64,000 nucleotides of DNA from Octopus bimaculoides (lineage: Eukaryota). Below the pieces are notes generated by a model that saw only the letters and a list, made by a program, of their open reading frames with translations, searched no databases and was not told the origin of the DNA. The DNA lies in the NCBI RefSeq assembly GCF_001194135.2, contig NC_068982.1, forward strand, positions 38,004,513-38,068,512. Direction: 5' to 3'. Positions 1-22,465 of this stretch are shown here, in pieces (position 1 is the stretch's first letter; each line of letters begins with the position of its first letter). The position numbers and the translations under genes were made by a program.

Positions 1-775
1 GCCGACACTGCCAGATATTTTGAGCATCTCTACAGTGATTCTTGATGGGCCGGGGCTTTTCCGGTCTTCATACTCTTAATTGCTTTATCTACCATGGTAC
101 TGTCAACTCGGATAGCTGGTCCCTCTGTTGGGTCGACATACGGCAGACTCTCTTTCTCCCATTCATTCTCTTTATTGAGCAATCTATCGTAGTGGCATCT
201 CCAGACCTCTTTCTTTGCAGCCTCATTTAATGCAAGCGTAACATCATCCATGCGAACACATTTCTCTCCTACGACATCACTATTCTCTCTCTTACAACAC
301 GAAATACCTCAAGTCTTTGGTCCTCACGGCGCTGAACATTGGCAAATTTTTTCTTATCTGCTTCCCCTCTGGCTAAATAAACCTGTCGCCTAGCTTCCCT
401 TCTGGCAGCCTGATACAATCCCCTGCTACCACCGTTCTTCCAATCCCGTTTCTTTTGTCTAATAGCCCTGTCTACCTCCTTGTTCCACCACCACCACGTT
501 ACTTTGTGTTGAGAGGGGACTTTACACCAGCCACAGATCTGGTCGGTGGCTCTCAGCAGGTTGTCCCGCAGAAATCTCCAATTGTCTTCCACGTTGTATG
601 ATGCTATATCCCCTTCTATTTCATCAAATGCTTCGAGTAACATGTCTCTAAATCTGTCCATTTGCAGGGTCTTTAAGCTTCCACACCCTTCTCCTCCAAG
701 CCGGTCTACTTCTGGGCACCCATTTTGCCTTGATCCCAAAGTCGCTAACTACTAATCTGTGTTGAGGGGCACATC
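1..775 (-). mobile_element. RTE-like LINE ORF2 fragment (end of the APE domain through the linker before RT), frameshifted
   Basis: PQHRLVVSDF (end of APE), VTWWW-NKEVDRAIRQKK, AIKSMKTGKAP (pre-RT motif) in ORFs 269..739 and 30..251. Confidence 0.9.
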
Positions 776-3706: not shown

Positions 3707-4125
3707 TGAATGTTAGGCTGTATTTTTTCCAGAATTTAAGTTGAATCTTTCAGACTAAAAAAATGAAAAGTGGGGAAGTCAATTTTATACACTAAGACAA
3801 CTCTGGAGGACGCACAAATTCCATGTGAAAAGCAGCAGGAGTTGGAAAGCTAGTGAAGATGTTTGAATGCTTCCATTATATGATTACTATATACCACATC
3901 AACTTGTATGCTGGAAAATATGGTAAGTGGAATCTATTTCAGAAGTAGCTATATAATTCATAGAGGATCAAATGTTAATTATTTTGTATCATTACTTTTG
4001 TAGCATTTGGAAAATGGATTTATTTTAACTTGACAAGTTTTGGCAACAGTAGAAAGTTCAGAGTGAATCAAGTCAACATAAAACACAATATACTTCACAA
4101 TTAAGCTGTTCAATATGGTTTATTG

Positions 4126-4415
4126 CAGGGGTTTTCAAACTTTTTGACTTGCGGACCCCTTTATATTTCAGGCTTTACCTTATATACATAAATATTTGCT
4201 TAAAATAACATATATTTTTACATTTATTTATTTAACAGTATTTAGCAAATAGGTTTATTGTCAATTATACACACAGGATTTTTTTAACACATACTTAGTG
4301 AGAAGGATGTGCTTGCTTGGCTCTGCACGGACCCCCTGTCTTGGCTTTCCACGGAGCCCCTGTCTTGTCCTTGCGGACCCCCTGTGGTCCGCGGACCACA
4401 GTTTGAAAAACCCTG
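4126..4415. mobile_element. hAT (Charlie/Buster-type) MITE, 290 bp
   Basis: TIRs CAGGGGTTTTCAAAC / GTTTGAAAAACCCTG (14/15). 8-bp TSD GTTTATTG / GTTTAGTG with central TA. Subterminal GCGGACCC repeats. Confidence 0.92.
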
Positions 4416-4528
4416 GTTTAGTGCTTCTTATATGCAGTTCCATTTCTGCAAACATTTGAGATGTAACAAAATAAAAAGGTTTTTAGTGAAGAGAGAATAC
4501 TTAACATACATACTTTAACAGGGACCGC

Positions 4529-4677
4529 TTAAACTGTCACTGCCACTTTCTTCTTTTTCTTCTTCTTGTTTTTAAACTTACTCTCAGGGGTGTATTTCTT
4601 TTTTTTTACAGATTTATGGCCATCATCATTTTTCGGGAATTCTTCAACTGTCAAAGATGTTGAGATAAAAAGATAAT
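4529..4677 (-). CDS. SURF2: SURF2 last coding exon (YLFISTSLTVEEFPKNDDGHKSVKKKKYTPESKFKNKKKKKKKVAVTV*)
   Basis: Acceptor ttgaaag|, phase 1, lysine-rich tail, TAA at 4531-4529. Gives DLYP-N/Y-YLF versus recalled human DLYPPELF. Confidence 0.8.
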
Positions 4678-5340
4678 CTTTCAAATGTGATAAAAACAAA
4701 AAAATCTGCATGACATGTGATTACTTACACAAATATTCCTTACTTGAAAAACAGGTAAGGGTTGGCAAGAGAAAGATTGCTTTGGCTATTTCATTCATGC
4801 TACTAATATTGTTGGAAAGGATATAAACATTGATTCAATATCTCCTCGATTATAGAGCTTTTAATCCAAAAGAAGCCAATATTAACTGAGATGAATCAGA
4901 CATAAGAACTGGTGGGCTTAAAGTATTTTAATAATATATATTATTATAAGGCAGTGAGCTAGCAGAACCATTACCATGCCAGGCAAAATGCTTAGTGGCA
5001 TTTTGTCCGCTTCTGAGTTCAAATTCCACCAAGGTCAACTTTGCTTTTCATCCTTTTGGGGTTAATAAAATAAGTACCTGTGCAGACTTGAGTCAATTTA
5101 ACCAACTTAGCCTCTCCCTGGACCTTGTTCACATTGTGTTAAAATTTTGACACAATGTTTGTGTGTATGTGCATGTACACGTTTGTGTGAGTGTGTACGT
5201 ATGTAGACATTATGAACACAGGAGGTTTTATGTCTATGTATTGTGAGAATATGCTTGCATGGATTTTTTACCTTTTTTTTCTACCTATTAGAGTAACTTC
5301 CCTTTTGTTCAACGGATTTTCATAGCATCTATTGCCATTA

Positions 5341-5399
5341 ATAGCTGATGAGAATGCATCGTAGCTCTTCGCTCTGACATTCGAAACTGCGAGTTCTAT
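5341..5399 (+). ncRNA. Minimal type-I hammerhead ribozyme motif, canonical core
   Basis: ATAG|CTGATGA|GAATG..21nt..CATTC|GAAA|C TGCGA G|TT|CTAT. Helices I, II and III all pair. Confidence 0.8.
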
Positions 5400-6731
5400 A
5401 ATGACAACTTACTGTTTGTTCTAAATTATACATATATATATATATATATATATAAATAAAAAATTCAATTTATTTGTATATGAAAATTAACATTCTTTTT
5501 ATTAAATATATTTGGATGGAACCTGTCTCTAATTTTCATATGTACACTGTATATTTTTTTTACACGGTTTTATTTTGCATGGTAGTCTCTGGAATGTGTC
5601 CCCCATGCAAAAAGAGAACTGAGTGTATATATAATTAACAGGCTTCTTTCAGTTTCGTTTTATGGAATCCACTCACAAAGCTTTGGTCAACCTGGGGCTT
5701 TAGTAGATGAGGCTTATCCATGGAGTCGTGGTGTCATGCAGTAAGATTGAACCTGAAATCACATGGTTGGAAAGTAGACAAATGTAACCAATGTGTTTCA
5801 CCCTTTTCAGAATGGCAGGGTGTGATTTGAAGCTTCTACTGCTATGGCCACCTGATGATTAGATGATGATTTTGCACTTCTTCATTTTCAGTTTCATCAC
5901 ATCCCTGATGAGTACACAGATGACCAGTATGAAGGAGACAGATTTGAAAACAAGATGATGAACTTCATTGTTTGTGTTCAGTAATTGAATACTGCCCTTT
6001 GTTCAGCTTCAAACTGTCGCACTACTATTGTTGGTGCCCCTTCATAACACCTTCCAATGTGCATGCATTTCAAAGTCATTAGCAAGAATTTGCACATGCA
6101 ACTGACCTTCCCAATGAGTCTTAGGATCATCACGTTGAAAAGAGCCCTCTTTTGGCAGATGGGTGAGTTTCTTATGTAGTGAATATGTTTCATGGTTGTT
6201 GCTTTGTCACTGATGCACTTCATACACTTGAGAATTGTTTTACTAAGGGATTGTGTTCTTCAGAGTGATTCCAAAGATACATTGAAGACAGCAAACATGG
6301 AAAGCTTCCAATGTTCTTGTTTGCTTTTAGTATAGCAATTATATTTTTACATCGTTGTAACAAAGCTAAAATAACATGCTAATTATATAAAGGCTCATTT
6401 GTAGTTTAGTCTACTAAGGAAAAAAGAGAGAATGAAAAGTTGCTTTTATAAAAGAAAGTTAAGAATTGAACTGAAATACACCTTGTGGGAGCCACTATGC
6501 TGTAGATCGACCTGCTAGAAATAACAGCCCAAATTTCCATCCAATTATTTGCTGCTGTTGTATTTAAGGAAAGGGATACATTGGATACAGTAGTTCTTCA
6601 TACACCTTAAAGGATGAAATTGGCATGGTTGGAATATCTTAAATCAGAGGTTGACTTGATCAAAATTGAACAGAGATTAAACAACAAATGTTATTTAATA
6701 AAGTCAAAAGTCTGTTTTAGTAATAACTTAC

Positions 6732-6899
6732 TTGGATAAAGATCACTTAAGCTGTCGTTATCACTTTGTTCTTCCTCATCTTCTTCATATTTTGATTTCT
6801 TCTTTCTTTTCTTCCCAATGTCTTTACAATTTTCTGAACAATTAGCTTTCTGTTTCTTTGAAACTACATATTCCTTGCTCTCTTTCTGGAATTCTTCCT
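6732..6899 (-). CDS. SURF2: SURF2 exon 4, copy C (EEFQKESKEYVVSKKQKANCSENCKDIGKKRKKKSKYEEDEEEQSDNDSLSDLYP)
   Basis: 168 nt, phase 1-1, taacag| ... |gtaagt. Open frame; paralogous to copies A and B. Confidence 0.7.
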
Positions 6900-7631
6900 C
6901 TGTTAAAGATATGATAAAATCAAAACTTAAAAATTTTTTTTTTTAATTCATGTAAATTTAAATAAAATTCCTAAGCATTATAAGTTAATGGAATATATAG
7001 TATTAAGCCAGCAGCACATTTGTGTAACGTAGCAGCTAAAATAAATGGACATTTAGTTTTTTTATTTGAAACATAAAACATTTCTATTATGTAAAGAAAA
7101 AAAATACTATGTCTCCTAAATATAGATAATTGAAACAAATGAAATGTTTTTTTGTGTTACTTGATTCATATAAACAAGAAACATAAAAGTAATTTACAGA
7201 GAAAAGTTAAGTATTATGTTGGCTTGTTTTACACCTGTTATTTTCTGTGAAGACATGGACTCGCTGATCATATATATTTGAGGAAGAATTTTATAGCTAG
7301 GTCCCTTTCTGTTGCCAAATAAGTGAATATATTATTCCACTGGTATTTGAGAGCGCACAGTTACAAGATATATTGCATACATGGACATCATCATTTTGCT
7401 CAGACACACCATGCAAAAATGCAAAATGTCAACATTCAAGCACACACACACATACATGTGTGTGTGTGTGAGATGTACGTGGATGCTAACAGAATCAAAG
7501 AAGTGACAGGAGATTGAAGTAGAAAGAAATTGTAGAAAGGAGAGAAGAGGATTTATGGACAAATGTCTTAAAAGTCAATCTCAGGATGTTATTTAATACA
7601 TTCTGTTTTAGTGAGAAACACCCTAACTTAC

Positions 7632-7781
7632 TTGGATAAAGATCACTTAAACTGTCATTATCACTTTCATCTTCCTCATCTTCTTCATATTTTCGTTTCT
7701 TCTTCCTTTTCTTTCCAATATCTTCAAAATTTTCTGAGCAGTTAGGTTTCTGTTTCTTGCCCTCTTTCTGAAATTCTTCCC
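7632..7781 (-). CDS. SURF2: SURF2 exon 4, copy B (EEFQKEGKKQKPNCSENF...ESDNDSLSDLYP)
   Basis: 150 nt, phase 1-1, taacag| ... |gtaagt. Open frame; paralogous to copy A with an in-frame deletion. Confidence 0.75.
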
Positions 7782-8885
7782 CTGTTAAAGAATGAAATAA
7801 AATCAAAACATCATTAGTTAATGGAATATATATCATCAAGCTAGCAGCACAGATGTGTAATGGCATAATGTAGCAAGCAAAATAAATGGACATTTAGTTT
7901 TCTTGTTTGAAACATAAAACACATCTATTATATAAAGAAAACGAAAAAAAAACAAACAAACTAACTCTCACACATAATAGAAACAAATGAAATGTTTTGT
8001 CCTTACACTTGTTTTTGCACTATTTCAGTTACATAAATAAGAAATATCATGAAAGTAATTTATGCTGATGTGTTGGTTATTTTGTTTATCTCGTTATAGA
8101 TCTGCCTTCTTTCCATGAATTCATGGAACTCGAAAATATATTTGAGGCAGTATTTTAAAGCTAGATGCTCTTCCTGTAGCAAACTCTTAACATTTTGTCA
8201 ATTAAGGGAATATATTATTTCACTGGTCTTTGAAAGTGCAGAGAAACAGGAAGTAATGCTTGCATGGACATCACCATTTTGTTGAGATACATGATGCAGA
8301 AGTGACAGGAGATTGAAGTAGAGAGAAACTGTGGAAGGAAAGATGAGAGCTATGGGCAAAAGTAGTAAAAGCTGATCTCAGGATGTTGACAAAAGAATGC
8401 AGTAGTTGTTAGAAAGGAGCCATCTAACCAATGCAAGCATTGGTTGGATGTAAGAGCAGACATAAAATAGATGATGTGTACATTCAGTTTCCATCTACCA
8501 CTTTCATGCACAAGACACTGACTGGTTCAAGCCTATCATAGAAAACATTTGGTACCATGCAATGTAGAAGAACGCTAAAACGTAATTATGACGCTAGCTC
8601 CAGACACTGTGATGGCAACAGAAACACACCTTCAGGGAGCCACTGTGTTGTGGATTGATCTGCTGAAAACAACAGCCAAAATTTCCCTCAAATTACATGC
8701 TACTATCTTATTTATGGAAAGAGTACATTAGATAAAGAAGTCCTACATTCTCCTAAAAGCATGAAATTTGTTGGCATGTTTTAGATCATATGTCTACTTG
8801 ATCAGATTTGAACTAAAATTAAACAAGAACAAATCTAATTTAATAAAACCAAAACTCTGTTTTAGTTAGTAACACCATAACTTAC

Positions 8886-9050
8886 ATGGATAAAGATCAC
8901 TTAAGCTGTCATTATCACTTTCATCTTCCTCATCTTCTTCATATTTTGATTTCTTCTTCCTTTTCTTTTCAATGCCTTCAAAATTTTCTGAAGAATTAGG
9001 TTGTTTCTTTGGAACTATATATTCCTTGCCTTCTTTCTGTAATTCTTCCC
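8886..9050 (-). CDS. SURF2: SURF2 exon 4, copy A (W-EELQKEGKEYIVPKKQ...EEDEEDESDNDSLSDLYP)
   Basis: 165 nt, phase 1-1, ttacag| ... |gtaagt. EELQKEGKEY and DSLSDLYP resemble recalled human EECQKQGVEY and DSMTDLYP. Confidence 0.88.
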
Positions 9051-9978
9051 CTGTAACAGATGTAAAAAAAATCAAAACACACATTTTAAAATTCTTTATG
9101 CAGACTTAAATAAAATTCTTAAACATTATTATTTAAAGGAACATTATAGTACCAGTCAGTATTAAACTAGTAACATATTTGTAACAACCAAAATAAATAG
9201 ACATTTAGTTTCTTTTATTTGAAATATAAAACACTTCTATTATATAAAGAAAAAAAACCAACTTTCCTAAATACAGATAACTGAAACAAATGAAATGTTT
9301 TATCTTTCCATTTGTTTTTGCACTATTTGAGTTACATAAATAAGAAACACCATGAAAGTAATTTATACTGAAGAGTTGGTATTTTGTTTCTCTCGTTTTA
9401 CATCTGCTTTTTTTCTAATGTGAAATGTATGTGTGCGTGTGTTTGTATGTGCTCGTCTTGACATCATGTGATAATTATAAAACATGCATCATCGTTATAC
9501 AGCAAGTTGCTTTCAGTCTTCTGTGAAAAATGTTTGGCCTAGAGGAAATAGGTGAGGGTTGGCGACAGGAAGGGCATCTGGTTGTAGAAAAATTTCCTCT
9601 CAATAAGTTCCGTCTAATCCTCAAGAGTGACCTCCCTTGTGGGACGTCAGGAAACAAACTTTGCTTTAAAATTTTTGTGTTCATCTGTGAATAAGTTAAA
9701 GATAAAATAGGTCCCGAGTTAAAACTTGTAGCACGCATTTATATTCTAGCAGATTAGTTCTAAACAGAACAGACTTCAAAGGTAGTAGATTTCCGACAAA
9801 GGTGTCTATGGAGCCAATCCTGAATCGATTTGCACATGTTAATGCTACAAACTATTTGCATTTCACATAGCAAAAGGGAAAGAGAATGAAAGAATCATCA
9901 GAGACTCCAGTAGTAAAGAATTCATAATGCTAACAATTTATATGATACATTTTCTGATTTCTGTAAAGGAAAACTTAC

Positions 9979-10082
9979 ATTTCTTAAAAGCTTTTTGGAA
10001 TTTGCGCCCATTAATATGTTTTTGTATGGAAGACTGTAAATTGTTGATATATTTATATGTCAATAGACACAGCAGTTGATTT
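9979..10082 (-). CDS. SURF2: SURF2 coding exon 3 (NQLLCLLTYKYINNLQSSIQKHINGRKFQKAFKK)
   Basis: Acceptor tatttcag| and donor T|gtaagt. Matches SURF2 hQLfCkLTlrhINk...rHtqGrryQrA. Phase fits exon 2 (AA+A=K). Confidence 0.93.
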
Positions 10083-10551
10083 CTGAAATACAAAAGGTAC
10101 ATGTCAATAGCATACACGTTTGTGTGTGTGTGCATGTGTGTAAAATTCTTGACTCAAAGATGGAGACCAGAAATGCTAAAAAGACTAATATGGATTAAAG
10201 ATAATCGCAGAGTTATTGACTTTGAAGAAAGAAAGTTTAGTTTTTGTGAAGCAGTTTAACCCTTTTGTTACTCTATTTATTTTGAATCATATTCCCTTCT
10301 TTCAATTAATCTGGAAAATAAGGAAGAATTTATTAAAAAATAATTTTGCAATTATCACGTTTGGGACATAAATCAACATGAAATTTTGATTGAAGATTTA
10401 AATTTAGATCATTTTAAAACAAGAACTTTGTATCATAAAGCCTTAAAGAGTTAAGCAATGTTATGCATGCAAAATAGCCATAAAGAATAATCAGTGATTG
10501 TGAAGACAAGTATTTGCAGTGATTTGAAATGAAGAAAATCAAACATCTTAC

Positions 10552-10709
10552 TTGGGAAATCTTTTTGTACTGTCAACAAGGTGTTGTCTGTATTTGTCAT
10601 AATCATAATCATTAAGAGCTTTGAGTCTTTTGTGTTTTTTCCCATGAAGGTAACTGTTCACAACTTTTGCATCACATGACATTTCATGGCCAGATAGACT
10701 ACATTTGAT
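10552..10709 (-). CDS. SURF2: SURF2 coding exon 2 (IKCSLSGHEMSCDAKVVNSYLHGKKHKRLKALNDYDYDKYRQHLVDSTKRFP)
   Basis: Polypyrimidine acceptor ctcctcactag| and donor |gtaaga. Matches the SURF2 motif vrCxLtGHElpC...YxxGKKyxrL...fdy. Confidence 0.93.
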
Positions 10710-10754
10710 CTAGTGAGGAGAAAAAAAAAATGATCTCAATATATGCAGACAAAT

Positions 10755-11372
10755 GGACACTAAACTTCGCTTGTGAAGACTTGTTGAGGCAAGTGAAATC
10801 GAACTAAATTCGACGACTGGCACCCGTGCCAACGTCGTCTCCTTCATTGGACACAAAACTCAGCTTGCGAAGACTTATTGGGGCAAGCGAAAGCGAAATT
10901 GGGATAGCACCTGTGCCCAGCATTGCCTTTCTGGCACTTGTGCCCGTGACATGTGTAAGGATTTTCGAGCGAGATCGTTGCCAGTGCCCCTGGACTGGCT
11001 CGTGCGGATGGCACATAAAATACACCATTTTGAGCGTGGCCGTTGCCAGTACTGCCTGACTGGCCTTCATAGGATTTTCGAGCGAGAGCGTTGCCAGTGC
11101 CCCTGGACTGGCTCTTGTGTGGGTGGCACATAAAATACACGATTTTGAACGTGGCCATTGCCAGTACCGTCTGACTGGCCTTCGTGTGGGTGACACGTAA
11201 AAGCACCCACTACACTCTCTGAGTGGTTGACGTTAGGAAGGGCATCCAGCTGTAGAAACTCTGCCAAATCAGATTGGAGCCTGGTGTTGCCATCCGGTTT
11301 CACCAGTCCTCAGTCAAATCGTCCAACCCATGCTAGCATGGAAAGCGGACATTAAACGATGATGATGATGAT
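10755..11372 (+). mobile_element. 5'-truncated RTE-like retroposon 3' end with internal minisatellite and (GAT)n tail
   Basis: Repeated units TTGCCAGT..GACTGGC and GGCACATAAAATACAC, then AGGAAGGGCATCCAGCTGTAGAAAC...CCAACCCATGCTAGCATGGAAAGCGGACATTAAAC(GAT)n. Highly similar to 57333-57733. Confidence 0.85.
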
Positions 11373-12734
11373 ACAAAACCTGATTAATTCTTATTTCCTT
11401 CAACATTGCCATAGATAGACGATAGAAATGATTACAGGAAGAGACTTAAATGGCAGGCCAAACATGCCACCTAGTACAACACTACTTCCTGGATTTTAGC
11501 AGAATTTGAATTGTTGCAAGCAGTTGGACATAGTCTCAGGCTGTGCTACTTCTTATCTGCATTTTCCTTATTTCAAGGATTGTTAGAAAGCATTAATGAA
11601 AAAGGTGTTCCAACACAAGTTGCTACCAAATTCAGGATCTTAAACACATGAACACACAGATAATGCTTTGAGAGGCTGGTCTAGCAACCAGTACATAATC
11701 ATATCAATTTTTTGACTTCATCACAAATATCACTTCATAATGAATACATGATTTCATGAGTACCATCTAAAGCCACTGACCATGAACTGGCCTATTCCTG
11801 AGTATCGACATAATGACCAGCAATACACTACGAGTTTCTCTCTCTCTCTCTATTTTTTTTCTGACACCCTTTGGGCGCTTCTTCGCTTTTACTCTGACTT
11901 TGAAAATGAAAGCACACTTAAATATAAAAACAAGACAAAAACAAACTACTAAATAAATTCTTATTAATCTATGTACAATATCTCAATTACTTCTTCCAAT
12001 TTTAATTTATTGTTCTCAGTGATTGTATTCTTTCTGACGGTTATTTTCTTACGATAACTTCACCATAACTTTGCCTTGGTTCACTCTTATGGCCACGTGT
12101 ACCACATGTTCGATGTGAACAATCCGATTTTCTTCAAAAGTTCTATAGTATGGTCATTGTCCTTAGCTTCTATATGAACCTCTCTGTAAATTATAATTTG
12201 AAATGACTATAATAAGTCATGTCAAAAAAGCTAATGAAAAAAAAAAATGACATGCGATAAAGGGAAGAATCGCTAACAAAGCCTTCCAAACTTTAGAAAT
12301 AAAATAAAATTCACCAGATAACTTTATTTACTTTTATGCCAATATCCAAAGGTCCTCATCTTCTACATTTACCAACATGTGAACGACATATTTTAACACT
12401 CCCTGTGACATTTTGATAGAATTACTTTTCCTTTGCCACTAACCAACGTGTATTTGTTTATATGGTGATATTATCCGTTTTGGGATTTATATACATCAAG
12501 ATATTTTCAAATTGTTTAACAGGAAAATGACAATAAACACGCTTAAAATGAGAGGAATGACAATATTTAATAATCTTAGTTTAGGTAATAAATAAAAAGG
12601 ATAACTGTATTAAAAGAGATACCAGAATCGTTAGTGCTATTTCGAGAGAAGTGAACTAAAAAATGTCGAGGTCTATAACGTAAACAATATTAACACTTCT
12701 TTGACTAGATAGGAGTATTTGCTATGTAACATAC

Positions 12735-12833
12735 CTTGCCAGTATCAGATAAATACTTGAGGTGGCTATTTTCCGACAGAATTTTTTGTATCTCTGCAGA
12801 TAATGTTGGTGAATTATTCGTATCGGTAGCCAT
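12735..12833 (-). CDS. SURF2: Surfeit locus protein 2, coding exon 1 (MATDTNNSPTLSAEIQKILSENSHLKYLSDTGK)
   Basis: ATG at 12833-12831, 33 codons, donor AAG|gtatgt. Resembles the recalled SURF2 N-terminus ([20 protein letters not shown]) and splices in frame to exon 2. Confidence 0.9.
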
Positions 12834-12920
12834 CACGCGTGGTGTATAACACGGTGCCGGAAGTATGGATAAAACTTCCGTTTTAAATCTCCATGACAAC
12901 ACGTAATCAATAATATCAAG
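12834..12920. promoter_or_regulatory. Bidirectional promoter SURF2/AXDND1 with two inverted ETS sites and an RFX X-box; probable non-coding AXDND1 exon 1 ending at 12920
   Basis: CCGGAAGT at 12857-12864, ACTTCCGT (ACGGAAGT on minus) at 12874-12881, ATCTCCATGACAAC at 12887-12900, strong donor CAAG|gtgagt at 12920/12921. The region is locally CpG-enriched. Confidence 0.7.
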
Positions 12921-13489
12921 GTGAGTTATTTATTCTTAATTAAAATATTTTTGAGGTATCCCTTTTCACTTCAAGAAAATTCTACGACACGACCTATTTG
13001 ATTTATTTCATTTTCTTTTAATCTTATATTAACTCTGAGTCTTTGGACTGAGGCTAAGCTGAAGTACCTTTTTCAAGGATTCAGACGATCATATTGATTG
13101 AACCGGTACTTAGTTTATGGAGATCGTTTTGTCAAACTGCTAAGTTACGAGACATCAAGAGACCAAAGCCACCCTACAGTCTAAAAACCGATGCAAAATG
13201 GATCACAGACACATACCTATACATATACAACATGTTAGTCCGTCATTGTTGATGACCAACAACATCACATAGGAGAAGAAAACGGGTGACGGTATGTCCA
13301 GCTACGACCGATCAGTCAGATATGTCCCCCACCCCCATTCCAAAACACTTTCACCTGAAAATTTTGTATATTCGGATTCTACATAGTAAATACTATATGC
13401 ATAGAAAATTTCATTAAAAAATATTCATTTTTCTGAAAGTTATGACCTCCCAAAGTCTGGGGGGTAAAACCCTGTAGTTATGCCATGTG

Positions 13490-13915
13490 GTCTACTGGGA
13501 GTGAAGGGAAAGAGTTGGTTCTGGATTTGCGCAGTTTGCGTTTTCCTTGTGTCCCTGCAATCCTGTTTTGTTCATAGGAGGTGACACCTCAGTTGGTTCA
13601 GCTTCACCAGGCAGGGCAGTCTTGTGCTTGTGTTTCCCAGGCGTCGGGGTTAATCTCAAAGCATTTCAGCGAGGCTTTGAGTGTATCCACGAAACACTTT
13701 TACTGTCCACTTTGTTTGTACTTGCCCTCTGTCAGTTCACTCTAAAATAGTCTCTTGGGTGTCGTGTGTCAGGCATTGAAATAAGGTGGCCTGCCCACCT
13801 GACTTATGCTCTCCTCAGTAGTGTGTAGATGGTTGGTAAATCAGCTTAAGAGAGGACCTCTATGTCTGGGACCTTGTCTTGCCAGGTGATTTTCAATAGC
13901 TCTCTCAGGCATGCT
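13490..13915 (-). mobile_element. RTE-BovB-like LINE C-terminal fragment
   Basis: Minus translation CLRELLKITWQDKVPDIEVL...VRWAGHLISMPDTR with stops and frameshifts. Confidence 0.88.
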
Positions 13916-14694
13916 TTCATACATACATACATACATGCATGCGTACGTACGTACGTACGTATGTTACAATTCCTATGTAGTAAATAAATGAAAAGAGGGA
14001 AATGTTCACCACAAGAAGTTGAAACCTGGAAACAAATTTGCTTTGTTTGGTACCTACCTGTATTTTATGATACTTGATATATACTTGCCACACCTTCAAC
14101 CTTCTTTTTTTTGTTGGTTGATTGGTGAACATGGTAAAACATTGGGTTTTATGCCATTCAGCATTTTTTTTCGTATTTGTTTTAGTCATTAGACTTCAAC
14201 CATTCTGGGGCACCCTCTTGAAGAATTTTAGTCAAACCTAATATTTATTTAGAAAAAATCCTGGTACTTATTCTATTAGTTTCTTTTGCTGAACTGCAAA
14301 ATTTATATGATTAAATGATGCAGACATGGCTGCATGGTAAGAAGCTTGCTTTTTAACCACATGGTTCCAGGTTCGGTTCCACTGCATGCCACCTTGGGTA
14401 AGTTCTTTTACTATAGCTTTAGGCTGACCAAAACCTTGTGTGTGGATTTGATAGATGGAAATTGAATGAAGTCTGCCAATATATGTATATATATATATAT
14501 ATAAGTCAGTAAATAGTGGGGTTGTGTTAACCGCACGTGGAGAAATAATAGGAAAATGAAAAAAAGCCAGAATGCTGAACTGGGAGCATAATTTAATAAA
14601 GATTTTTTCTAACCGGTTTTCATTGCGATGAAGCAAATTATCAAGAAGAAGGAGAATGAAAATGTTTTTTTACAAAGAAGTACAAAATGAAGAA

Positions 14695-20805: not shown

Positions 20806-21037
20806 AAGGCGACGAGCTGGCAGAAACGTTAGCACGCCGGGCAAAATGCTTAGCGGTATTTCGTCTGTCTTTACGTTCTGAGTTCAAATTCCGCCGAGGT
20901 TGACTTCGCCTTTCATCCTTTCGGTGTCGATAAATTAAGTACCAGTTACGCACTGGGGTCGATGTAATCGACTTAATACCTTTGTCTGTCCTTGTTTGTC
21001 CCCTCTATGTTTAGCCCCTTGTGGGCGATAAAGAAAT
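20806..21037 (+). mobile_element. Young tRNA-derived SINE (Nin-domain-like) nested in another SINE
   Basis: AGGCGACGAGCTGGCAGAAACG...GAGTTCAAATTCC (B-box)...GTTGACTTCGCCTTTCATCCTTTCGG; CpG-rich; TSD AAGAAGC at 20799-20805 and 21038-21044. Confidence 0.88.
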
Positions 21038-22465
21038 AAGAAGCTTGCTTCCCAACCACATGGTTCCGGGTTCAGTACCACTGCTTGCACATTTGGCAAG
21101 TGTTTTCTACTATAGTCTTTGGCTGACCAAAGCCTTGTGAGTAGATGAGGTGGACGGAAACTGAAAGAAGCCCGTCGTATATATATATATATATATATAT
21201 ATNNNNNNNNNNTGGAGCCTGGTGTTGCCATCCGGTTTCACCAGTCCTCAATCAAATCGTCCAACCCATGCTAGCATGGAAAGTGGACGTTAAACGATGA
21301 TGATGATGATGATGATGTATATATATATATATATATATATTTGTGTATGTGTTTGTGTCTATGTTTGTCCCCCCATCACCGCTCGACAACCTGTGTTGGT
21401 GTGTTTACGTCCCTGCAACTTAGTGGTTCAGTCAAAGAAACTGAAGAATAAGTACTAGGCTTAAAATTGATAAGTCCTGGGGTCGAATTGTTTGACTAAA
21501 ATCCTTCAAGGCGCTGCTCCAGCATGTCCACTGTCAAATGACAGAAACTAGTAAAAGAATTAAAGAATAAATTAACTAAAATGATCATGATTTCACTCAT
21601 CCATGTTCTCACCCTCCTTTCTTTTCCAACTGGGGTATCCATTGTATCTATTCCACTGGAAGATTGCTATCTCTGTCCCTCTAATCTCACATCAACTGGC
21701 ATGAAGCCATCCTCCTCAGTACTATTCTGCCCCTCCCAGTTGAGGGATTTTTGCCTTGCAAATTACTTGATGACCCTGTCAGTGATGGTGCTATGTAAAA
21801 AGCATTGGTGTCGGTGCTACATAAAAAGCACTGCTAATGGTGCCATGTAAAAATCACCCAGTCCCCTCTGTAAAGTGGTTGACGTCAGGAAGGGCATCCA
21901 GCTGTAAGAAGTATGCCAAAACAGACAGTGGAGCTTGATGCAGTCCCATAGCCTGTAAATTGTCCTGCTAAATCGTCCAACCCATGCCGGCATGGAAGAT
22001 GGACGTTAAATGATGGTGAATGATGAAACGAAATTAGAAAAAGAGTAATCAAATTGAGGTTTATATTTCTATGTGTGTATTCCTTTAACAATAAGTTTAA
22101 ACATGGATTTATTGAGGTTGGCTCCAGCTACTACTAGGAAGTCAGAGATGTTTGCAAATCTTCCCATTTAGAGTTAGTTGCTTAAAAGCTACACACTAGC
22201 CTAAAAACCGCACAATAGGACAGCTTTTAAGCTAGTGCATACATACATACAAAAATATCCTGTTGTTGATGTTGAAATTCCAATAAGGCAGCCTTGGATC
22301 TTTCTTTATTTGCTAGAAATCTTGAAATAAAACTGAACAATGTCATACATACATACATATATGTTTGTATGTATATGTCTGTATATGAACATGTGTGTGT
22401 GAGTTTTCACCAGTATGTTTTAATATGATGAGATAATTAATGTGATTTTAAAAAATTAATTGCAG

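Follow-up and report, generated by a model that had tools for sequence, protein, structure and literature searches.

Tandem exon duplication, which Letunic, Copley and Bork reportedly surveyed genome-wide in 2002, generally leaves adjacent homologous exons of symmetric phase, each with its own splice sites and with a co-duplicated intron, and the protein modules added lie mostly in disordered regions. Alternative exons are also known from unproductive splicing coupled to nonsense-mediated decay (NMD), as poison or skipped-cassette events. Clusters of mutually exclusive exons, such as exons 5a and 5b of SNAP25 (PMC2581893) and those of a human survey (PMC5740500), likewise originate from tandem exon duplication, and their members are similar in length and phase. 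Human SURF2, a partner of the free 5S ribonucleoprotein (RNP) and an antagonist of MDM2, has structured residues 1–136 that bind RPL11 and RPL5, and its remainder is disordered (PMC11436901). Here, we describe the SURF2 gene of Octopus bimaculoides, in which exon 4 occurs in three tandem copies (A, B and C). The gene lies on the minus strand of a window of 64,000 nt (assembly GCF_001194135.2, contig NC_068982.1, positions 38,004,513 to 38,068,512). The locus shares the sequence features of tandem exon duplication named above and differs from it in nothing of kind; it is a textbook case of ordinary duplication enlarging a disordered tail. Neither SURF2 as a gene nor Octopus as a clade has been described in this respect in the literature searched, where no discussion of octopus SURF2 was found.

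The locus was read by splicing the open pieces of the minus strand at GT–AG borders, and the product was then used as a query; all exon coordinates are window positions on the minus strand. The spliced product matched 'surfeit locus protein 2 [Octopus bimaculoides]' with 100% identity and 100% query coverage (P0001, 320 aa; XP_014776301.1, XP_052832493.1 and UniProt A0A0L8H114), and the gene maps to CM046602.1, a chromosome record in assembly GCA_001194135.2. P0001 belongs to the SURF2 family (Pfam PF05477, E = 3.4e-41, 141.8 bits at a cut-off of 25) and has 25 invariant alignment columns in common with 19 homologs.

The coding part of exon 1 (12735..12833), located by conceptual splicing to P0001 and by tblastn of residues 1–34, starts with the ATG at 12833 and is followed by the donor gtatgt. 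Exon 2 (10552..10709, 158 nt) runs from phase 0 to phase 2, and the final T of exon 3 (9979..10082, 104 nt), just before gtaagt, is the first base of a split codon. The three copies of exon 4 are all of phase 1-1: copy A (8886..9050) has 165 nt, reads GG...T and encodes (W)EELQKEGKEYIVPKKQPNSSENFEGIEKKRKKKSKYEEDEEDESDNDSLSDLYP, copy B (7632..7781) has 150 nt and reads GG...A, and copy C (6732..6899) has 168 nt and reads AG...A. The terminal coding exon (4529..4647) begins with TT and stops with TAA. All three copies have cag directly before them and gtaagt directly after, are free of stops and carry SDNDSLSDLYP at their C-terminal end. All splice sites around the copies are GT–AG, and the introns measure 928 nt (exon 3 to A), 1104 nt (A to B), 732 nt (B to C) and 2084 nt (C to the terminal exon). 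Three intact tandem copies with these lengths and phases, with open frames, splice sites and motif kept, had been proposed in the initial annotation and were reproduced from the sequence.

It is very likely that a SURF2 segment with the symmetric exon 4 was tandemly triplicated in an ancestor of Octopus and that the copies are included in series. Self-blastn and the repeat families D1–D11 delimited three duplicated segments on the minus strand, 0.8–1.3 kb in size. The first (8114..9416) comprises copy A with some 366 nt of the intron upstream of it, as well as downstream intron; the second (7247..8113), with copy B, is shorter and misses part of the downstream-intron homology; the third (6469..7246), with copy C, shows a sharp end of detectable homology at 6469. 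In self-blastn, 9416–8617 matched 7246–6469 at 76.6% over 817, and 9415–8856 matched 8113–7602 at 74.9% over 570. The homology thus reaches beyond exon 4, by about 370 nt into the upstream intron and by no more than 270 nt into the downstream one. As the nhmmer E-values of the three units range from 1e-65 to 1e-72, the exon-4 similarity is not due to chance.

The exon copies are 88.5–90% identical to each other, compared with 70–84% for the flanking introns, and the fraction of mismatches is 10.8% in the exons versus 21.0% in the flanks (Fisher p = 8e-7). Indels between the exon copies are of 3, 15 and 18 nt only, all multiples of three, and the intron flanks contain 3–15 indels per 200 nt of arbitrary length. 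The earlier description of the introns as diverged through indels holds; they are still recognisably homologous. Neighbouring, similar exons in the same orientation, a co-duplicated flanking intron, symmetric phase and a length divisible by three are the features by which tandem exon duplication is recognised, and at the level of sequence they point to a segmental duplication and not to convergence.

Copy number was determined at the loci of four other species: O. vulgaris (L001), O. sinensis (L002), Argonauta hians (L003) and the cuttlefish Acanthosepion pharaonis (L004). The genomes of O. sinensis and O. vulgaris each hold three exon-4 units spaced about 1.2–1.3 kb apart; Argonauta and Acanthosepion each have one. 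The motif is present once in 18 of 18 non-Octopus SURF2 proteins (bivalve, brachiopod, echinoderm and two fish proteins included; the human protein is not among them), unlike the Octopus protein, which has it three times and has a much shorter tail behind it. In the 20-protein SURF2 alignment, the module is repeated in only the two Octopus sequences. These counts bear out the suggestion that the basic-plus-acidic DSLSDLYP module was amplified in one lineage, and the triplication appears to be octopus-specific, not special to O. bimaculoides.

The copies cluster by position and not by species, each of A, B and C with its counterparts, and the triplication must therefore have preceded the divergence of these Octopus species. 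The divergence of the paralogous introns (~20%) is roughly four times that of the O. bimaculoides and O. sinensis orthologs (~5%), so the triplication would have taken place well before these two species separated.

Some differences between the species were also observed. Copy B of O. bimaculoides (7632–7781), compared with its O. sinensis counterpart (L002, 8090–8257), has an in-frame deletion of 18 nt that removed KHVVSK-like residues, and the copy is full in O. sinensis and O. vulgaris. Relative to O. sinensis, B of O. bimaculoides carries six synonymous differences, more than A (0.5) or C (2). In decapodiforms, spliced Logan transcripts of cuttlefish or squid (P0005 and P0006, 185–187 aa) read through DLYP into the counterpart of the octopod intron (…DLYPSKMLCDENGNED stop; L004, 14697–14895), and decapodiform SURF2 may end right behind the DLYP motif. 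The GenBank model P0032 is a SURF2–ACTR5 fusion and probably an annotation error.

Conceptual splicing of exons 1-2-3-A-B-C-terminal gives exactly P0001 (320 aa), and P0002 (264 aa), once listed in RefSeq as isoform X2, is reproduced exactly by the splice with A and B but not C. The remaining combinations with an open frame would encode 214 aa (A only), 209 aa (B only), 265 aa (B and C) and 159 aa (no copy). The lengths first predicted, 224 aa for A only to 330 aa for all three, were 10 aa too high, the computed values being 214 and 320. In O. sinensis, isoform X1 (P0029, 326 aa) contains A, B and C, and isoform X2 (P0031, 270 aa) A and C; the O. vulgaris model P0003 splices A directly onto C. 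The minor annotated isoform accordingly skips C in O. bimaculoides and B in the other two species. Extra copies are contained in gene models of three annotations (RefSeq Gnomon, the UniProt entry of the genome paper and the O. vulgaris annotation), and models of the triplicated gene are already public in RefSeq and UniProt.

Each module comprises 50–56 residues, with a basic KKRKKK run, an acidic EEDEED run and DSLSDLYP. AlphaFold, run on the 20-sequence alignment, gave a confident fold for residues ~8–130 (pLDDT ~90) and low confidence for 131–320. The last helix of the model (112–127) spans the boundary of exons 3 and 4, so that the first residues of copy A are predicted to complete the folded domain, and B and C would be two added disordered modules. 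The octopus protein resembles human SURF2 (PMC11436901) in its PF05477 membership and in its layout, where a folded N-terminal domain precedes a disordered tail with D-S-[LM]-[ST]-D-L-Y-P. A preprint on the octopus ribosome (PMC13321053) makes no mention of SURF2 or 5S.

The origin of this arrangement can be pictured as follows. A segment of ~1.25 kb, consisting of exon 4 with the 3' part of intron 3 and the 5' part of intron 4, would have been tandemly duplicated to three once the Argonauta lineage had branched off, but before O. bimaculoides parted from O. sinensis and O. vulgaris. Each copy would have come with its own acceptor, purine-rich body and gtaagt donor. Purine-rich GAA and AAG bodies resemble classical exonic splicing enhancers, and the body of each copy would aid its recognition as an exon. 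Because of the phase-1 ends, the length in multiples of three and the separate splice sites, all copies could be included in series with the frame intact. The main product would then carry three consecutive modules, which extend the disordered region that follows the folded SURF2 domain at the N-terminus, and single copies could also be skipped as cassettes. Any functional gain from the three modules is something we infer.

A later step would concern O. bimaculoides only. Here, the junction codons are TGG for exon 3–A, exon 3–B and A–B, AAG for B–C, and TAG for exon 3–C and A–C, in agreement with the boundary bases first reported (exon 3 and A end in T, B and C in A, and C starts with AG). All units read GG...A in O. 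sinensis, O. vulgaris and Argonauta alike. The junctions in the first two species are TGG (exon 3–A) and AGG (A–B, B–C and A–C), and, as the units are all GG...A, no combination creates a stop in these species. The derived changes in O. bimaculoides are A to T at the last base of A (8886) and G to A at the first base of C (6899). Through these two substitutions, exon 3 or A joined to C would read TAG, so that skipping of B would be unproductive and skipping of C productive. The initial annotation had stated that C can be translated only directly after B: the codon arithmetic is right for O. bimaculoides, but the rule does not extend to O. sinensis and O. vulgaris, where A joined to C is annotated.

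One alternative is that the TAG split codons are a selected device coupled to NMD, in which inclusion of C depends on B and SURF2 dosage is tuned by unproductive splicing. By the 50–55 nt rule of NMD, the TAG of exon 3–C or A–C, which precedes the final exon junction by 166 nt, sits in the classical position, and as in known unproductive splicing, skipping of B or of A and B in O. bimaculoides brings a TAG into frame well ahead of that junction. The minor annotated isoforms also fit the permitted junction codons. However, the stop in SURF2 arises from a split codon between paralogous exons and in one species only, the stop-generating arrangement was not found conserved in the related species, and all combinations are open in O. 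sinensis, O. vulgaris and Argonauta. Two point changes suffice to produce it, and a conserved design behind the NMD-coupled cassette that had been suggested is unlikely because the rule rests on these derived substitutions absent from the relatives. Moreover, pipelines would not list a TAG isoform as coding; the difference in isoforms between the species is therefore expected without selection and is no proof of regulation. A selected device is thus quite unlikely, and the TAG rule is best read as a species-specific by-product and not as a designed switch.

A stronger consequence of the same two changes can be considered. Massive A-to-I RNA editing is known from octopus, and editing at the first base of C would speculatively turn UAG into UGG and AAG into AGG, bringing back the ancestral junction codons. 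That the substitutions at 8886 and 6899 rewired the isoform repertoire of O. bimaculoides, with A joined to C now a substrate of NMD and C translatable only behind B, possibly together with such editing, we regard as unlikely; with such editing, the isoform repertoire of SURF2 in this species would depend on it. SURF2 was not found in the supplements of one cephalopod RNA-editing paper (PMC8382921).

A second alternative concerns the history of the copies, namely that B or C is the ortholog of exon 5 of Argonauta, an older paralog of exon 4, and was made similar to A by gene conversion. At the Argonauta hians locus (L003, 11115–11369 and 11701–11793), exon 4 is single, and exon 5, likewise of phase 1-1, bears a weak resemblance to it (self-blastn E = 5e-6). 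The unit profile matches this exon as well (nhmmer E = 1.8e-8), a blastn match to it was obtained from copy C only (E = 1e-9), and Octopus has no other counterpart: none was found, and a tblastn search of the window for relics of exons 5 and 6 of Argonauta gave nothing significant. Against conversion stands the homology of A, B and C in the introns, which reaches ~370 nt on the upstream side and at most 270 nt on the downstream side at 70–84% identity and would require a tract of more than 800 nt followed by even divergence. Furthermore, C is nearer to Argonauta exon 4 (E = 6e-20) than to exon 5 (1e-9). We consider conversion improbable and prefer triplication of the exon-4 segment within the Octopus lineage.

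Traces of an earlier duplication round were detected in the terminal coding exon. The nhmmer profile of the nine Octopus units matches window positions 4670–4508 (minus strand; E = 8.3e-10, 34.6 bits), compared with a best score of 5.7 bits in 1000 dinucleotide shuffles, and the likeness was also seen with blastn and with Smith–Waterman alignment (z 7–10). The match spans the acceptor region, with GAAGAATTCC at its start and ...AGTGACAGTTTAAG...AAGTATGT at its end. The 3' part of the exon is in a shifted frame, with the stop TAA sitting in the unit's TTA-AGT. The unit profile also matches the terminal exon of O. sinensis and O. vulgaris. By these similarities, the terminal coding exon of SURF2 is related to the exon-4 unit, as an older and degenerate member of the series. 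Orthology to exon 6 of Argonauta covers its 3' end and the first part of the 3' UTR (untranslated region), and the shifted-frame state is therefore old. The octopod SURF2 tail seems to have been built through repeated duplication of one phase-1 exon.

Further features of the terminal exon were noted. Its stop comes from the unit's ...AGTTTAAGT... read in a shifted frame, and the donor-like AAGTATGT comes next. An internal phase-1 GAGA|GTAAGT (gtaagt at 4582–4577) is conserved in the three Octopus species. In O. vulgaris, model P0003 splices from this internal donor to a very small exon lying 4 kb further downstream (ctag|CTAACTGA; L001, 23379–23387), so that its protein ends in ...ASETN. The counterpart here (~1590–1470, minus strand) is 85% identical and reads CTAACTTAA, with the stop lost and about 40 more codons open. 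We also considered the basic C-terminus (KKKKKKKVAVTV) as a recent frameshift of the acidic tract in Octopus. This was ruled out by the orthology with Argonauta exon 6 and by the fact that a basic C-terminus is general in SURF2; any C-terminal frameshift is old, and runs of GAA and AAG readily align in a shifted register.

A third alternative would make B, C or both decaying pseudo-exons that ab initio or homology-driven prediction stitched into the gene models. The acceptor, the donor and the open frame are retained in 9 of 9 exon-4 copies of the three Octopus species, and the indels in multiples of three stand beside indel-ridden introns. This retention of frame is a stronger argument for constraint than dN/dS. 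The comparison of dN/dS among the copies with intron divergence, suggested at the outset, was carried out and points in the same direction, the exons being more conserved than the introns. Pairwise values between paralogs range from 0.13 to 0.42 and are lowest for the pairs with B (0.13–0.15). Pooling of the three post-duplication stems by parsimony gave 7 synonymous and 9 non-synonymous changes (omega ~0.23; p = 0.006 for a non-synonymous deficit).

Several points nevertheless weigh against inclusion of all three copies under constraint, and some of them favour decay. Inclusion of B and C, and with it the actual inclusion levels that we infer, rests on gene models of annotation pipelines. No Logan transcript contig of Octopus SURF2 was present among the protein collection searched; identical stretches of at least 31 nt common to copies A, B and C probably break such assemblies. 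The selection tests on single copies are underpowered and non-significant (p ~0.11 each), the Nei–Gojobori counts are small and ignore transition bias, and the sequence is rich in Lys and Glu. Between O. bimaculoides and O. sinensis, exons (95–97%) and introns (85–96%) barely differ in identity, and recent constraint is therefore not demonstrable. Copy B, in addition, has lost its 18 nt in O. bimaculoides. On the other side, pseudo-exons would have to keep sites and frame in all nine copies, show the lowest dN/dS in pairs with B and recur in three separate annotations, and we hold this explanation to be very improbable.

That A, B and C form a mutually exclusive cluster with one of them per mRNA, as was once suggested, is scarcely credible. 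The copies share with known clusters the same phase, a similar length and an identity of ~89%; unlike those of the SNAP25 type, however, they are annotated together, all three serially in two species (P0001 and P0029) and two in other models (P0002 and P0031), their joint inclusion is in frame, the introns of 732 and 1104 nt impose no steric block, the uniform GT–AG sites offer no mechanism of exclusivity (competing RNA pairings were not among the features examined), and C alone would read TAG in O. bimaculoides.

The surroundings of the gene were also inspected. Head-to-head with SURF2, beyond 12833 on the plus strand, lies a gene for a protein of ~1229 aa with PF10211 (axonemal dynein light chain; L005), an arrangement found in Octopus and Argonauta and unlike that of vertebrates, where the neighbour of SURF2 is SURF1. 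Downstream, below 4529, the neighbour has Siah-interacting-protein and CS domains. Copies of an interspersed element were found at 10807–11445, ~14270–14670 and 20900–21400; their translations share …HASMGWTI… and …GLVKPDGNTRL…, a 115-nt tandem pair is present at 10958–11183, and there are several matches in the Argonauta locus. Near 21100–21250, the sequence contains a short stretch of N. Two overlapping open reading frames (ORFs) at 33–748 (minus strand; 159 and 92 aa) have the look of retroelement fragments, and Pfam gave 0 matches for both. Rfam gave 0 matches for window positions 4000–13500, and there was no notable plus-strand ORF in the SURF2 region. Tandem Repeats Finder reported only short arrays in this region and misses the SURF2 units because their length exceeds its period limit.

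The triplication of SURF2 exon 4 leaves the current understanding of tandem exon duplication unchanged. It offers a datable example of a symmetric exon lengthening an intrinsically disordered tail, in which the copies are open in three species and a degenerate older copy serves as the terminal exon. It also illustrates that, where split codons lie at the junctions of paralogous exons, single-base changes can separate the isoform repertoires of close species. SURF2 has recently been linked to the free 5S RNP and to the nucleolar stress response, and a natural variant with three modules could help to probe the DSLSDLYP tail.

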